A stretch of 63,174 nucleotides of DNA, counting the filler, from Choristocarpus tenellus KU-1152 (lineage: Eukaryota > Protista > Phaeophyceae), in the NCBI GenBank assembly GCA_964200185.2. It is 10 parts of 10 records of this genome, joined end to end, with 100 filler letters (N's around TTAATTAATTAA, not from the genome) between each part and the next. Parts side by side here need not be neighbours in the genome. Positions count along the whole stretch, not along the records: positions 1 to 10,983 come from CAXNAD020002584.1; 9 more parts are not named here. One strand, 5' to 3'. This document shows, piece after piece, positions 4,100-10,770 of the stretch (position 1 is the stretch's first letter; each line of letters opens with the position of its first letter). A program made the translations under genes and the position numbers. The notes below the pieces were generated by a model. That model searched no databases, was not told the origin of the DNA, and saw only the letters and a program-made list of their open reading frames with translations.

Positions 4100-4900
4100 C
4101 CCTTGCCTGCAACATGTCCATCATACGATTTCTCCCCACCAACCAACCTCCCCTGCATCATTCCCAATCCCAGGGCCTACTATTTACTCATTTGAAGTAT
4201 CACACCAACATACCCAGCTGAACCTCTCCCCCAATCGCTTCCCGAATCATGCTCTCAACGTGAGGGCATGGCATCAGCGATAGATGTCTTATTCAATACC
4301 TGCCAATAAGAGGCTATCCTCCCCTTCACCTTCCCTAACCTTCAGAGATTCCTATGCAGTTGTTGTATGTGAAAAAAGTGCCTGCTCCACCATGAGCTCA
4401 CCCACCCACAAAGACACATTCACACTCACCCCCACCAACACATGTTCAACCCCTGTTCTTCTGTCCTGTGTAATATATTATTAGGTGTCGGTGCAGTACA
4501 TCATCCTTTCGGCAGGCTACTTTGTATTGGCAATCTATGCTTTATTCATGCACTCAAAGGTGAGGCGGTGGCAGCACCTGCTGGGCCCCGTATTTCTACC
4601 ACCTCGAGTGTTTGGATGTCATCCCACGGTCTCTCTTTGATGCAGCCCTGAGGCATACCAGCCAATGTAAACTTACTTATCTTTGGCTGACCTCTTCTCC
4701 ATTCACATCCCTCACCACTCCCATCTGTACCAACAGTGTAGGCATGCACGGATAGGCCCAGTAGTGGTAGAGCTCCCTATTCCCAACTGCAGTGCTTACC
4801 CACATAGCTTGTTCCATCAAGCCCACGAGAGCAATCCCATCGATCCCTAACCAGTACATTTTGAGGATGGGAATCCAAGCCTTGACTCCATCCCTAGTCA
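4100..4900 (-). mobile_element. Possible decayed non-LTR retrotransposon (LINE) 3' remnant
   Basis: Minus strand has a degenerate Cys/His-containing segment resembling a LINE ORF2 C-terminal zinc knuckle. It has many stops and no RT motif was recognised. Confidence 0.25.
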
Positions 4901-6546
4901 AATATATTTCTCATTGACTGCGAGGCAGACAGCATGGCAGTAAGTCTGACCGTGAAGCTGTCACCCACGACCGCTGTGAGAAAGAAGAGAGAGTAGGTGT
5001 GTGTGGGTTGATCGTTTTGAGTTTTGAGGGTTCATTAGCTTTGTGTAAAGAAGATGAAGACACTTGCAAGAGGGCATCGATAAGGATAACCAAAGATAGC
5101 CCCCAAACAGTCAAAATGCACTCCACGCCTGTGGGCTGATTGCTCTAAGGTACGTGTCACCAGAAAGCTCCAAGAAAGCTCCGAGGGTCCTTACGACTCA
5201 GCGACACCCCTCTCTGGGCTACATTGACTCAGACATCACTGCTCAAAGGTCACCATAAGGAGGGCTAACTCTCAATCTCAAACCTGACACGATCCTTGGC
5301 CATATCTATATTCCTCCTTTTATCTCGTGTTGCAATGGTAAATCACTGCACATTTTGTGCAAACCTCTTGAAGAGAATCGAGAAAATGTCGATCGAGAAA
5401 CTGGTGCTTGGCAGGGTGAGACGGAGGAGTCGGTGCAGCACAACGCTGTGTGCCCATGTGTGGATAACCAAGTGAGTGATAGGACTGGCGTGAGAATAGA
5501 GCGGGCCCCCTCCCTTGCCTTGAGCATGTAACATCTCAAATGGAGCTTGTCAATAGTTAGGGGAGGAAATGTACCACTGGTTGGTGAGAATAGTGGTGTA
5601 GGACTGCTTTGGTGGTGTGAATCTCACGCCTCAACAGCCAAAGTGTATGGAACCCGCATTATCAGGACAGAGCATAACTATTTGGATTTCTTAGAATACT
5701 GTGATATATCGATTGGGCACGGTTTGGGGTTTGAAAGTTTAGATACTTGCCCAATCTAGGGCACCTGGGTCATATACAATGGTGCCCAAATGTTGACAAG
5801 GATCCGCTAGCACTGGAGTGCTGAGGTGCTATTGAGCGTTGGTTGAATATTTGTCCCACCTCATACCCCCCCTCGCCCCAATTCCCCTCCCGTGTGTACA
5901 TCCTTACCTCAAAGCTAATCTCATTTCACAAGGGTAAGGCTCCGGAGCAGTATTAGGAGGGAAGCATACTGCAATTCTCAACTGCAAGCTGTGCAGGAGG
6001 GGATCAAAAAAGCGTTGAGGAAAGCCGATGAGGCAAGTCCCTGGGGGTCCTCAGTCCTGAATTTCGTCCCGATTCTTGCCCAATTTAGTAAACCCCTCTG
6101 CCCCAAGCCCTCAATGACCCTAGAATTGACCCTCAACTAAAAACAACCCACTAGGATGACGATCACGACTCAGGAGGAGGCTGCCAAGCAGCGCTGCGAA
6201 TCAAAGATAAAATCCCTGGAGGACCAGTTTGGGAAAGCTCTAGAGGCGGTGAGAGGAGAAAAGCAAAAGGGCATCAGATCCCTGGGGGTCCTCAGTCCTG
6301 AACTTTGTCCCGATTCTTGCCCAATTTGAGTAAAGCCCTCTGCTCCAAGCCCTCAAACCCCCTAACATTCATTGACCCTCAACTAAAAACACCCCCCCAC
6401 TGGGACAACGATCATGACTCAGGAGGACACGGGCAAGCAGTGTTATCAAGCTGAAATTAAATATCTGAAAGACCAGAACAGAGAATTGATCGGCATGGCT
6501 CTAGAGGCGGGTGAGAGGAGAAACGCAAAAGGGCATCAGGTCCCGG

Positions 6547-6849
6547 CAAGATCAATAGAAAAAATATTTTCTGATAGATTTTTTTTTAAATACCTAAAAG
6601 GACCTGAAACTGCTTCTACATCTATTTGATCATTTTCCCCATAGTATGACAGAATACTTTCCAAGTATAGCTCTCAGAAAATACTTTAAAAGTTATATCC
6701 AGTTTTGTAAGAATATGTGCTTTTTTTGATAAAATGGTAGCTGAATTACACCAGGGCAAAAAACTAGGACAATTTTCTATATCCCTAATAATTTCCTTTA
6801 TCAACTCAGCTTTACAAGCTAAAACTTTGTTATCACTATATGAATGCAT
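6547..6849 (-). pseudogene. ratA: Bacterial RatA/PasT (Coq10-like START-domain) pseudogene, alphaproteobacterial-like
   Basis: ORF 6622..6849 has DIENCPSFLPWC (family motif DV..YPEFLPWC) and FSESYT. After a frameshift it continues IDVEAVSGPFRYLK..FSID. AT-rich, truncated. Confidence 0.85.
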
Positions 6850-6902
6850 GCATAAAAAATATATATATATTAATTAAACTGCTTATACATTTTTTTGCCT
6901 TA

Positions 6903-6980
6903 CTAATTGCGTTTTTTTTTATTGTTACCTGCATGATAAGAAGAACAAGTTAATGGAGAAGCTACAACCCTTGAAAAACC
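6903..6980 (-). pseudogene. lipA: Lipoyl synthase C-terminal fragment
   Basis: Translates GFSRVVASPLTCSSYHAG, matching the LipA C-terminal motif GF..V.ASPL(T/V)RSSYHA. Lies directly upstream of ratA on the same strand. Confidence 0.8.
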
Positions 6981-7171
6981 GTTACATTGAAAAAAATAAT
7001 GCTTATCCATTATTTAGTAAGAATTTCTTTTAAAAAAATTGTGCAGTTCTTGCGATTAGCAACTCAGATGCAACTCTTGAAACTATTTCCCTAGTGGGAA
7101 TAATGATTTCTTAATTTGAAAGAGCTGCAGTCCAGAATATTGAAAGACATTTCTATTTTAGTACAAATCCT

Positions 7172-7348
7172 CAGTCCGGTATCCTAAAAAAATGTTGTTT
7201 ATAGCATGCTAAATTATAACTTTTATAGGTAGAGATGTAGAAATCCCATTTGGATAAACTGTAGAATTATCTAATCCTTCTGGTTCCAAGAATATTTGAT
7301 GACTCTCTTTGTTTGAAAAATTTACTATTTTATCTTCTATTGATGGAC
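7172..7348 (-). pseudogene. mnmG: tRNA-modification enzyme MnmG/GidA internal fragment
   Basis: Translates [40 protein letters not shown], the highly conserved GidA block. A stop and frameshifts follow. Confidence 0.92.
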
Positions 7349-8773
7349 TGGAGTTCCTCAGTCCTGAAATTCGTCCCGATTCTCACCCAATTTGAGTAAA
7401 CCCCTCTGCTCCAAGCCCTCAATGACCCTATCATTGTACCTGAACTAACAACACCCCACCGGGATGATAATCATTACTCAGGAGGAGGGTGCAAGGGAAA
7501 GTTACCAACAGTGAATAGAATCCCTGGAGCATCAGAGAAGAGAACTGGCTCAGAGGGTGAAGGAGATGGAATCCCTGCAGAGGCGCTCTTCCAGGGTATC
7601 CAGAGCAACCGTAACCAAGAAAGGTAATGAAAAATCCGTCGATTGTACAAGAGGAAAGAACAAAAACCACGCACCAATTCCAACAGCTGGGACTTTGCCC
7701 CAGCAGAAGGAAAAGGGTAGGGTCTCGTTGATTGAGGATGTAGCATTCTTACACTGGAGGGTGTATATTTGGGCAGGGTCAATGCATGTGTTTACACCAT
7801 GCTTGGGTGGGACAAGGTTGAACCATGAGAAAATTCACAAGCACGCATGCGCACAGAACAACACACACGTATATCAGGTCAGATAACACAGAGGTGGATC
7901 AACACGGTAGAGTATGACACGTGCAAAGAAGAGGGGGCTAGTATACTGATGCGCAGCTGCCATGCCTCCATGTTCCACAGTATCAAGTGGTGCAGGCAGC
8001 ACTATTGAAAGGGATAGAGGGTGCCCCCATTGCCATCCTTGTTCTAGCCGTGAACCACCCCTTCAAGGCAGACCACTTTCAGTACAGTTGTGCTATCATT
8101 AACCACGAGAAATTTGAGAAAGAACAGGCTGGGATGTGGACAGTAGAGCAAACTTGGCAGGCATTTACCAGTATGAGGCAGGACAACCGCCTTCACTCAG
8201 CCATTCACCCCACGCTCTGATATGGTTGTTTCATGTCCTCAACTTTGTATCCCTCTCAGATCTTCTCCCTGGTGTCAGCCTGAATGGTGGCGGGTCCACC
8301 CCTCAGGGCTTGAGTGGTCATCTACGGTAAGATGAGCTTGTATTGTCTGGGGCTATTTTTATTAGTGTGTAGAGCAGCAACAAAATGTTGGAACCAGTTG
8401 TGCACAACAAAGAAGCACAAGTGACGCCCGCCTGTGGGATTCCCAAAAAGCAAGGAGAGTCGTTGCCTGCTTATCAGAGGAGCAGCAGCACCAACTACAA
8501 CAACACAATTTTCTGCCGGATGCCACCTCCTTCCAGAGAGATCAGTACATTCACAGCTATTTTGAGTTCAAAGCCAATTCACAAACTGACTGCAGAGGTT
8601 TCATTTCTCCACCATCCCAACGGACTTTGAACTACCCCTCCGCTCTATCTTCACAGGCGGATTGACCCTGAGATTCAGTTGGGAATCAGGAACCCTAAGA
8701 ACACTAACTGCTATGCGTGCAGTACCGTCCAGACGAGTCAGGGGTTACATTGTAGTGTGTGCAGTGTGCAGGA

Positions 8774-8810
8774 GGGAAGGGAAGGGAAGGGAAGGGAAGG
8801 GAAGGGAAGG
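8774..8810 (+). repeat. (GGGAA)n microsatellite
   Basis: About 7 perfect pentamer units. Confidence 0.95.
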
Positions 8811-10770
8811 ACACAATATTCATTCATTGGGACAGACTGTATGACTGATTCCTATTGCACAAGACCAAGTGATTGCCCCGGGTTATGATTCATCTCTGTA
8901 TAGCAGGCTTGACAGCATTTCACCAGTGTTCTCTTTGGCTGTCCCAGGGTCTGGCCAACTCAATCCCGCTCACCAACTATCCCATGACCTGGACCCAATG
9001 CTCAGGCCGTGGCTTCACTGCCAAACTTTGTCAACACCCTACAGAAGAAGGACGTTGTGCAATCAATGCTTCGGCCGGAGGAAGGTATCATGTGGTCTGC
9101 ATGTCCTGGGGTCCCTATCTTGATTTGTTGGACGTGTAGTCCTTGCACACCTGATTATACCCTCAACCCCGAACTTCAGTACCACGAGAGCGCAGCCTGT
9201 GGTTGTGTCCTTGTAAGAATAGCTACCAGATGGAGTATACTACTGAACTGTTGCAAAATCGTTATCATGCTCAGGAGTACATGGCATAGTGTGTACTTCT
9301 TTTATCCGACGCGACAAGAGAGATAGTTCCTAATCCTTCCCAGATGTCCCCGGAGGATGCTTGCATCAAGATGTAGTTGCCATCCCATTCCAGTCATACA
9401 CATCCAAAGGCGATCCCTATGTTTTCCCACCCATTGTATATAACATAAACCCTACCTTATCACCCTTGCCCAGGTGACTCCCCGTACCGTCACCTACTTC
9501 ATTTCTCCCTCTCTCGAGGAGAATTGGGAACTATTGGGGCACATAAGATCCTGGAAAGTGTCAACAGGTGAGTTTTCAACATGAGCGATCTCAACCCTGA
9601 TCCTATTGATTGGTCATCTGAGAACCATGGCTGCAGCTTCCTCTTCCAAGGCGGCGTTGTAGGCCTGGTTGGGGAGCTCATTGGTTGCACGAGATTTTTC
9701 TGGAAGTACTGCGGATGATAGTACACCGGTATGGTGCACAAGGTGCAGACATGCCAAGCGTTCAACTCTCTTGGTTCAACGGCTACCTTCAGGTCCATTC
9801 AGTCACATCAATCAAATACATTCCAAGAGGCAGAGGATTTGGCATACCGAGGAGGAAGAAGGGAACAACAGAGATCAGGACTATCAGCAACGTAACAATG
9901 GCCTTGGTGTGCTGCTCTTGTTCGGCACTTAGCCCCTCTTGTAGATGTTAGTTGTGTGCCACCAAGCGAAATATCTGCAATGCCAAGGATACTCTCGCTG
10001 CAACAGCCTCTCATGTTGTGTATTTCTCTTTCTTGGTGAAACTCTATCGCTAACAAAAGTCATTCCACAGTAGTACGCTTTGAACGGGAGATTGGAGGGA
10101 GCTTCAAGGGTTGATTTATCTCTTGCCTGAGCTTCATGGTAACGTAAAAACAAAACGATGATACCCTTGCCTCCGCACAATTGCCCATCGCTCCAAGATA
10201 GGACCACGTAGGGGATGATCCACCTTCTGCCAAGCATCAAGCCACGGGTCTGGCTCGTCTCCATGCTAACGATGCTCCCACTGTCAAGCTCCAAGTGTTG
10301 TGGGACTTTGGAACCCAACTATCTCCTCCCTCAGAATACAGGCATTGAACCCCTCCCTTTGGAACGCCTCAAAAAGTGTGTGTGCGCAAACAAGCGCATG
10401 CATTAGCCATACCCCCCAGACTCGGCCTGCATCACACTCATGGACATGTACAACAATGACCCCCCAAACAAAAAAATATCCTCTACAGGGGTGGTTGCAC
10501 TGACCCAAATCGAGAAGGGTTTGGGCAAGGTCGTGGGGAATATGCCCAGGAGTTTTTGTCTTGTCTCCTGAGAACAGTGGCAATGGAGGAGGACCGGACG
10601 GGCACAGTCCCAAGGCCCACATAGCACCTTCAGGGGAAGGTTGAGGTAAGACAACTAATTCACGGCGCTTGATAAAACCATTTGGGGATACCAGTTGATT
10701 GAACACAGTTAAGGTAGATTGTCACCTCACGCTAAGAAATTCACCCAGAGTCTGCTCTTGAGGTGTGTTT

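Follow-up and report, generated by a model that had tools for sequence, protein, structure and literature searches.

Decayed fragments of bacterial genes, probably from a Rickettsiales-like donor, within host DNA of the brown alga Choristocarpus tenellus

Structure of the locus

The window considered here is the entire contig C2584 (10,983 bp) of the brown alga Choristocarpus tenellus, one of 27,310 contigs that make up an assembly of 164 Mb. Within it lies an AT-rich block of 803 bp, at positions 6545-7347, with a GC content of 28.8% as against 48.9% in its flanks; along the sequence, GC runs at 27-31% over about 6550-7350 and at 47-52% on either side. A block of this kind, some 800 bp long and with edges at 6547 and 7348, had been described at this site, and those edges are within 2 bp of the ones determined here. 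All the recognisable gene pieces of the block are on the minus strand, in the order mnmG, about 200 bp without a match, lipA and ratA. The features of the locus are as follows.

4875-6226 (no strand): left host flank, collinear with a second contig, C16660, at 96.2% identity over 1353 bp
6041-6281 (plus strand): host repeat unit 1, of the direct-repeat families D1-D4
6282-6544 (plus strand): host repeat unit 2, running up to the left junction and closing with ...CATCAGGTCCC
6545-7347 (minus strand): inserted AT-rich bacterial block, 803 bp, 28.8% GC, single copy
6545-6640 (minus strand): continuation of ratA in a shifted frame, with a deletion of about 8 codons (tblastn match 6551-6625; RatA HMM positions 79-98)
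6625-6849 (minus strand): ratA/COQ10-type SRPBCC gene, residues 1-66 and 9 out-of-frame codons, with its own ATG at 6849
6850-6905 (minus strand): spacer of 56 bp between lipA and ratA, genes that are likewise adjacent in the Rickettsiales genome G283 and at 16 other loci
6906-7013 (minus strand): 3' end of lipA, its last 26-35 or so codons, with the stop codon at 6903-6905
7014-7211 (no strand): AT-rich stretch of 198 bp without a match
7212-7347 (minus strand): internal fragment of mnmG (gidA), residues about 281-325 of about 620 (TIGR00136, E 3e-18)
7348-7600 (plus strand): host repeat unit 3, in register at the right junction and sharing 88% identity with unit 2 in its initial 88 nt
7536-10120 (no strand): right host flank, collinear with C16660 at 94-97% identity

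The mnmG piece is open over 45 codons, with neither a stop nor a start codon, and matches positions 272-314 of TIGR00136 (E 3e-18) as well as an MnmG HMM built from 79 alphaproteobacterial loci (E 2e-26). It is 84-90% identical to alphaproteobacterial MnmG and has a third-position GC of 0.11, the coding pieces of the block ranging from 0.11 to 0.25. An apparent extension of mnmG upstream of 7348 ('SGRISG') was dismissed as a chance resemblance, as it lies in a host repeat that is also present without mnmG. The AT-rich stretch at 7014-7211 matched none of the LipA, MnmG and RatA HMMs and nothing in NCBIfam; it is either a third piece or else lipA or mnmG in an advanced state of decay. The lipA piece is recognised by NF009544 (E 0.002) and by an HMM built from ten Rickettsiales LipA sequences, of which it covers positions 284-309 of 322 (E 1.4e-6), and it is 61% identical to the LipA of G283 over 23 residues. 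The N-terminal part of ratA (6625-6849) matches PF03364 (E 8e-6) and an HMM built from 30 RatA sequences (E 2e-22) and is 48% identical to the G283 protein; its frame is lost after residue 66 or so, and the gene is cut by the left junction at about residue 109 of 147. A complete START/SRPBCC domain would occupy about 145-155 residues in a single frame, and the remnant falls short of this. The co-oriented fragments of mnmG, the lipA C-terminus and a frameshifted ratA that were originally proposed are thus upheld by the HMM matches, with the qualification that only the last 26-35 or so codons of lipA are recognisable. The pieces are decayed and, given their stops and indels, do not represent a living gene; judged from its sequence, the block would encode nothing usable and be non-functional. 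Because the assembly is Nanopore-based, sequencing error could account for single-base frameshifts within AT-rich runs.

Bacterial origin of the block

The block is of bacterial origin. Its pieces match bacterial mnmG, lipA and ratA, and the best 80 mnmG loci retrieved from species genomes, with identities of 72-90%, belong without exception to alphaproteobacteria. Furthermore, of 45 alphaproteobacterial loci, 17 have lipA immediately upstream of ratA in the same orientation; G283 provides one of them, with a gap of 4 bp between the two genes, and the lipA-ratA junction can therefore be taken as native to the donor. The claim that lipA followed by a RatA/Coq10-type gene is a common alphaproteobacterial gene order is borne out by the same count.

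An origin nearer to hand would be that the pieces are decayed copies of host MTO1, LIAS and COQ10, or organelle DNA moved to the nucleus, since mnmG, lipA and ratA all have eukaryotic nuclear counterparts of alphaproteobacterial ancestry. The host lipoyl synthase (lipA/LIAS) genes, on C4012 and C2589, are multi-exon and the host MTO1-like exons are set in sequence of about 45% GC, which is host GC, whereas the block keeps a bacterial operon junction, in which the lipA stop, a 56-bp spacer and the ratA ATG follow one another at 29% GC, and has neither the composition (third-position GC 0.11-0.25) nor the exon-intron structure of host genes. The organelles are represented by contig C1, the plastid, with two inverted rRNA operons carrying trnI and trnA, and by contig C71, the mitochondrion, with nad7, rns and a permuted mitochondrial 5S rRNA; the plastid RpoB and the mitochondrial Nad7 agree exactly with database entries of C. 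tenellus, which identifies the host. The block has no match to either of them and matches only itself in the assembly, these two contigs included, i.e. it is single copy. Because host lipA is intron-split, the MTO1-like exons are at host GC and the block is single copy, it is neither a host gene copy nor organelle DNA, and an origin of this kind is considered extremely improbable. The original prediction was right on both counts, in denying that the block was a NUMT or NUPT and in preferring a bacterial source to host MTO1/LIAS/COQ10.

Host DNA on both sides and an insert-free contig

On either side of the block are units of a host direct repeat of about 241-262 bp, which begin at 6041, 6282 and 7348; the unit expected at 6545 has been shifted by exactly the extent of the insert. 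Unit 1 ends with ...CATCAGATCC and is followed directly by CTGGGGGTCC..., and in the same manner unit 2 ends with ...CATCAGGTCCC at 6544 and the next unit opens with CTGGAGTTCC... at 7348. As the block is flanked by the end of one unit and the start of the next, the insertion is exactly at a repeat-unit boundary, with an ambiguity of at most one base. The flanking repeat family is also found on C513, C15076, C12165 and C16660, and on C513 (2400-4700) copies of this repeat of about 250 bp, some 72% identical to one another, are strung into longer tandem arrays.

Along its full length, contig C16660 (4015 bp) is collinear with window positions 4875-10120, at 94-97% identity, and is without the insert. 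It lacks window positions of about 6227-7535, which amount to two repeat periods and the insert, so that it has one repeat unit versus three in the window. Since C16660 is collinear with both flanks, the flanks belong to one host locus of which an insert-free copy exists. That copy differs from the window by 4-6% and may be an allele or a paralogue/recent duplicate; the insert could have been lost from it by recombination between repeat units, or could never have been present.

A rival account is that reads from a culture bacterium have been wrongly merged into host contigs, in which case the block would not be in the algal chromosome at all. According to the genome paper, C. tenellus is among the long-read assemblies and bacterial contigs were removed; this deliberate filtering means that bacteria were present in the cultures, and an assembly in 27,310 contigs is a fragmented one. 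Against such an artefact, host sequence adjoins the 803-bp block at either end and continues the host repeat in register, and a single further contig runs collinear with the two flanks. Host DNA on both sides of the block is thus found on one molecule at the level of the assembly, from which all the evidence for integration is drawn, and at that level the sharp tandem-repeat bounds of the insert, and its integration as opposed to chimera or contamination, are as had been claimed.

Further bacterial fragments in the assembly

A survey in which a handful of bacterial families was searched against the assembly revealed, elsewhere than on C2584, four or more additional bacterial fragments of AT-rich composition, some of them with stops: a dnaE piece on C1559, a uvrA piece on C1321 and two rpoB pieces on C16841 and C7107. 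The dnaE piece is open over 71 codons (NF004226, E 4e-30). It is contained in an AT-rich island of 23-33% GC with flanks of 45-55%, at about 300-1000 on that contig. The island also gives a weak match to the RimP C-terminus (the 3' end of rimP; E 0.004) followed by an apparent nusA start, and it may combine, as the block does, part of the interior of a gene with an operon junction. The uvrA piece (C1321:6279-6580; NF001503, E 7e-22) has two TGA stops and a frame-shifted continuation, and lies in a short stretch of 31-38% GC. Of the two AT-rich rpoB pieces, the one at C16841:1755-1916 has one TAG stop and no similarity to plastid rpoB, and the one at C7107:1166-1255 gives a weak match of 28 residues, at 50% identity, to plastid rpoB. 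Other rpoB-family matches, on C11929, C6396 and C525, turned out to be host nuclear RNA-polymerase exons and were set aside.

Neither a donor genome nor any fragment of virB4 was found in the assembly, in which there is no bacterial 16S apart from that of the organelles, none that is donor-like, and no full-length dnaE, uvrA or rpoB apart from the plastid rpoB. SSU-like pieces on C3948 and C5273 were rejected as donor sequence. The piece at C3948:7515-8301 shares 69% identity with the host mitochondrial rns across 674 nt, resembles it more than it does Rickettsiales 16S, and looks like an old, diverged transfer, and a further SSU-like piece at C13979:600-978, 97% identical to the host mitochondrial rns and unlike Rickettsiales 16S, is a recent one. 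Separately, the ATP/ADP translocase family (PF03219) gave 20 matches in the assembly, some with many stops, those with up to five stops being at C1768:6099-6488 and C679:6006-6311 and on C18994 and C17617; multi-exon host transporter genes are present alongside on C6531 and C8337. Should the PF03219 matches with stops prove AT-rich, they would represent what is left of a gene that is a hallmark of energy-parasitic intracellular bacteria.

The multiplicity of loci also bears on the question of a merging artefact. Truncated genes from loci that lie far from one another in related genomes make up the block, other fragments carry in-frame stops, and in both respects they are unlike the reads of a living bacterium, from which, moreover, no 16S and no full-length dnaE, uvrA or rpoB remain in the assembly. 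Taken with the flanks, this makes misassembly of culture bacteria a quite improbable source of the block.

Affinity of the donor

The mnmG and dnaE pieces are too conserved to separate the alphaproteobacterial orders. The nearest counterparts of the RatA piece are only about 50% identical; among 1.84 billion representative proteins its best true match was 51% identical, its own ORF was found in this genome only, and a related-locus search with the piece found no relative. A second representative match to a window ORF (P0002) was to a tandem-repeat protein and was discarded as spurious. RatA was compared in two samples, one of 401 genomes of the order to which a named Rickettsiales endosymbiont belongs and one of 401 genomes from across the whole class, and the best scores were 57.6 bits (G283) and 55 bits (G381) in the former versus 47 bits in the latter. 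In a careful RatA tree the window falls in a group of 14 rows together with G283, G381 and G135 (UFBoot 85, SH-aLRT 87), and no strongly supported clade in that tree holds the window. The G135 RatA is the database protein of Ca. Megaira polyxenophila, and another subgroup of the RatA tree consists of Midichloriaceae. A quick RatA tree, in which Pelagimonas, SAR116, Pseudokordiimonas and Micavibrio were the four named genomes from outside Rickettsiales, has a branch with an SH-aLRT of 97 that parts these four from the window. It could be that an AT-rich amino-acid composition pulls the fragment towards AT-rich genomes in such trees.

The remaining fragments were placed by identity. Compared with a fixed panel of 16 genomes, the uvrA piece shares 90% identity with G283, G381 and G135, 84% with G001, 75-76% with G079 and G103, which also belong to the order Rickettsiales, and 71-73% with the rest. 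The rpoB piece on C16841 is closest to G283 (75%) and the dnaE piece, within the order sample, to G135 (83%). Across the fragments, the nearest genomes are G283, a Rickettsiales genome of 1.48 Mb (1,479,996 bp), and Ca. Megaira polyxenophila. As fragments from different contigs rank the same genomes, they point to the same Rickettsiales neighbourhood, and the pattern fits, on sequence grounds, one donor lineage near the Megaira group without a sampled close relative. The donor thus looks like an AT-rich member of Rickettsiales, its closest available relatives being the Megaira group of Rickettsiaceae and G283. The suggestion of a Rickettsiales-like donor in the original prediction is in this way favoured by the best matches of five fragments and by a RatA tree of moderate support.

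The insert might be real and yet derive from an AT-rich alphaproteobacterium of another order than Rickettsiales, be it a free-living marine lineage like SAR11 (Pelagibacterales) or a member of Holosporales, and if this were so it would say nothing about a Rickettsia-like endosymbiont. The about equal scores of the mnmG and dnaE fragments against many alphaproteobacterial orders, the RatA matches of 45-47 bits in the class-wide sample and the moderate support in the RatA tree are all compatible with such a donor. What speaks against it is that the RatA, uvrA and rpoB pieces, from three contigs, all rank G283, G381 and G135 first, that the gap for uvrA is a clear one (90% versus 71-76% lower in the panel), and that the SH-aLRT 97 branch of the quick tree stands between the window and the four named genomes, the careful tree being without a strong clade. 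A donor from another order is accordingly judged unlikely, and it is likely that the block is real nuclear debris from a Rickettsiales-like bacterium. The best relatives, the Megaira group and G283, are host-associated Rickettsiales, and the donor may likewise have had an intracellular lifestyle; the searches of the assembly yielded no donor genome, virB4 or donor-like 16S.

Mosaic structure, mechanism and age

In G283, G135 and G381, the three closest genomes, mnmG and ratA are 680-790 kb apart, and the claim that separate loci have been joined is in agreement with these distances. The mnmG piece comes from inside its gene, so that its position beside lipA reflects either the joining of distant fragments or large deletions. 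Break capture of ligated pieces is known for organelle and Wolbachia DNA, and a comparable series of events may be envisaged here. Bacterial DNA would have been set free within the host cell and broken, and pieces from loci hundreds of kb apart, an internal part of mnmG and the operon junction of the lipA 3' and ratA 5' ends, would have been joined end to end. The joined product would then have been captured, presumably by end joining, at a double-strand break between two tandem-repeat units without loss of target sequence, after which the inserted DNA would have decayed neutrally, with a frameshift and a deletion in ratA.

The 10-mer ATCAATAGAA occurs in the window only at 6551-6560 and 7335-7344, in inverted orientation. 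The two copies are six and three bases inside the respective ends of the insert, 0.04 matches being expected by chance, and if a 3-base gap is allowed about 16/19 bases agree. Each copy lies within sequence homologous to its own gene (ratA 'FSID', mnmG 'SIED'), and the pair may be a coincidence or may be microhomology used in joining.

An old germline integration had been proposed. The integration is supported by the collinearity of C16660; the word "old" is less well founded, as a third-position GC of 0.11-0.25, far below the composition of the host, argues against great age.

Comparison with known systems and significance

Nuclear transfers from Wolbachia in insects and nematodes, like NUMTs and NUPTs, are fragmented, often mosaic and non-functional, are captured at breaks and decay neutrally. 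The C. tenellus fragments differ from them in that the donor is neither Wolbachia nor an organelle and in that the host is an alga. A closer parallel is provided by Volvox carteri strain EVE, which is endosymbiont-free and has in its nucleus a rickettsial insert of about 9 kb with four genes (Kawafune et al. 2015, PMC4324946). Here too a multicellular, non-phagotrophic alga carries Rickettsiaceae-type DNA in its nucleus, and this DNA has been read as the trace of a past infection (PMC4324946), but Choristocarpus is a brown alga (stramenopile) and its pieces are of 0.1-0.8 kb, scrambled and spread over at least five contigs.

Several Rickettsiaceae are associated with ochrophyte algae. MegNdeciBESST is a Megaira-group member of the family recovered from Nemacystus decipiens data, with 31.75% GC and 1.27 Mb (Davison et al. 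2023, PMC10132079); by its description it can be set beside the Choristocarpus fragments as a brown-alga-associated, AT-rich Rickettsiaceae, although it is a near-complete bacterial genome bin and the Choristocarpus DNA is integrated in the host. Ca. Phycorickettsia of eustigmatophytes and Ca. Penulousia baltica of the dictyochophyte Ciliophrys are also Rickettsiaceae of ochrophyte algae, a group of associations described as scarce, and unlike the Choristocarpus debris they are living endosymbionts with complete genomes. Specialised intracellular bacteria have seldom been recorded from ochrophytes; a 2026 preprint knows of just two earlier cases, a single one of them in a brown alga, and adds a third. 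The searchable literature contains no report of endosymbiont-to-nucleus debris in brown algae and no paper linking Choristocarpus with such bacteria or inserts. What is described here is most likely a known kind of event, endosymbiont-to-nucleus debris, in a new host lineage, and it is probably genome-wide.

As to how far it extends, five fragments, about 0.8 kb, were recovered from four test genes totalling about 12 kb, from which a rough extrapolation gives donor DNA of the order of 100 kb. It is a tentative proposal, to which we would give somewhat less than an even chance, that the C. tenellus nucleus contains dozens to hundreds of small fragments of one undescribed Megaira-group Rickettsiaceae or, alternatively, that this bacterium is still in the culture and its contigs have been filtered out. 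If true, the fragments would constitute a fossil record, kept in the genome, of an endosymbiosis in the order that branches earliest among the brown algae.

For annotation, the implication is that such islands should be treated as debris, neither removed as contamination nor interpreted as functional horizontally acquired genes. The fragments can serve as markers datable by comparing strains and sister species, and they would be independent, heritable evidence of a Rickettsiaceae-like bacterium inside cells of the Choristocarpus lineage. All this suggests that an early-branching seaweed lineage carries, or once carried, an undescribed intracellular bacterium.
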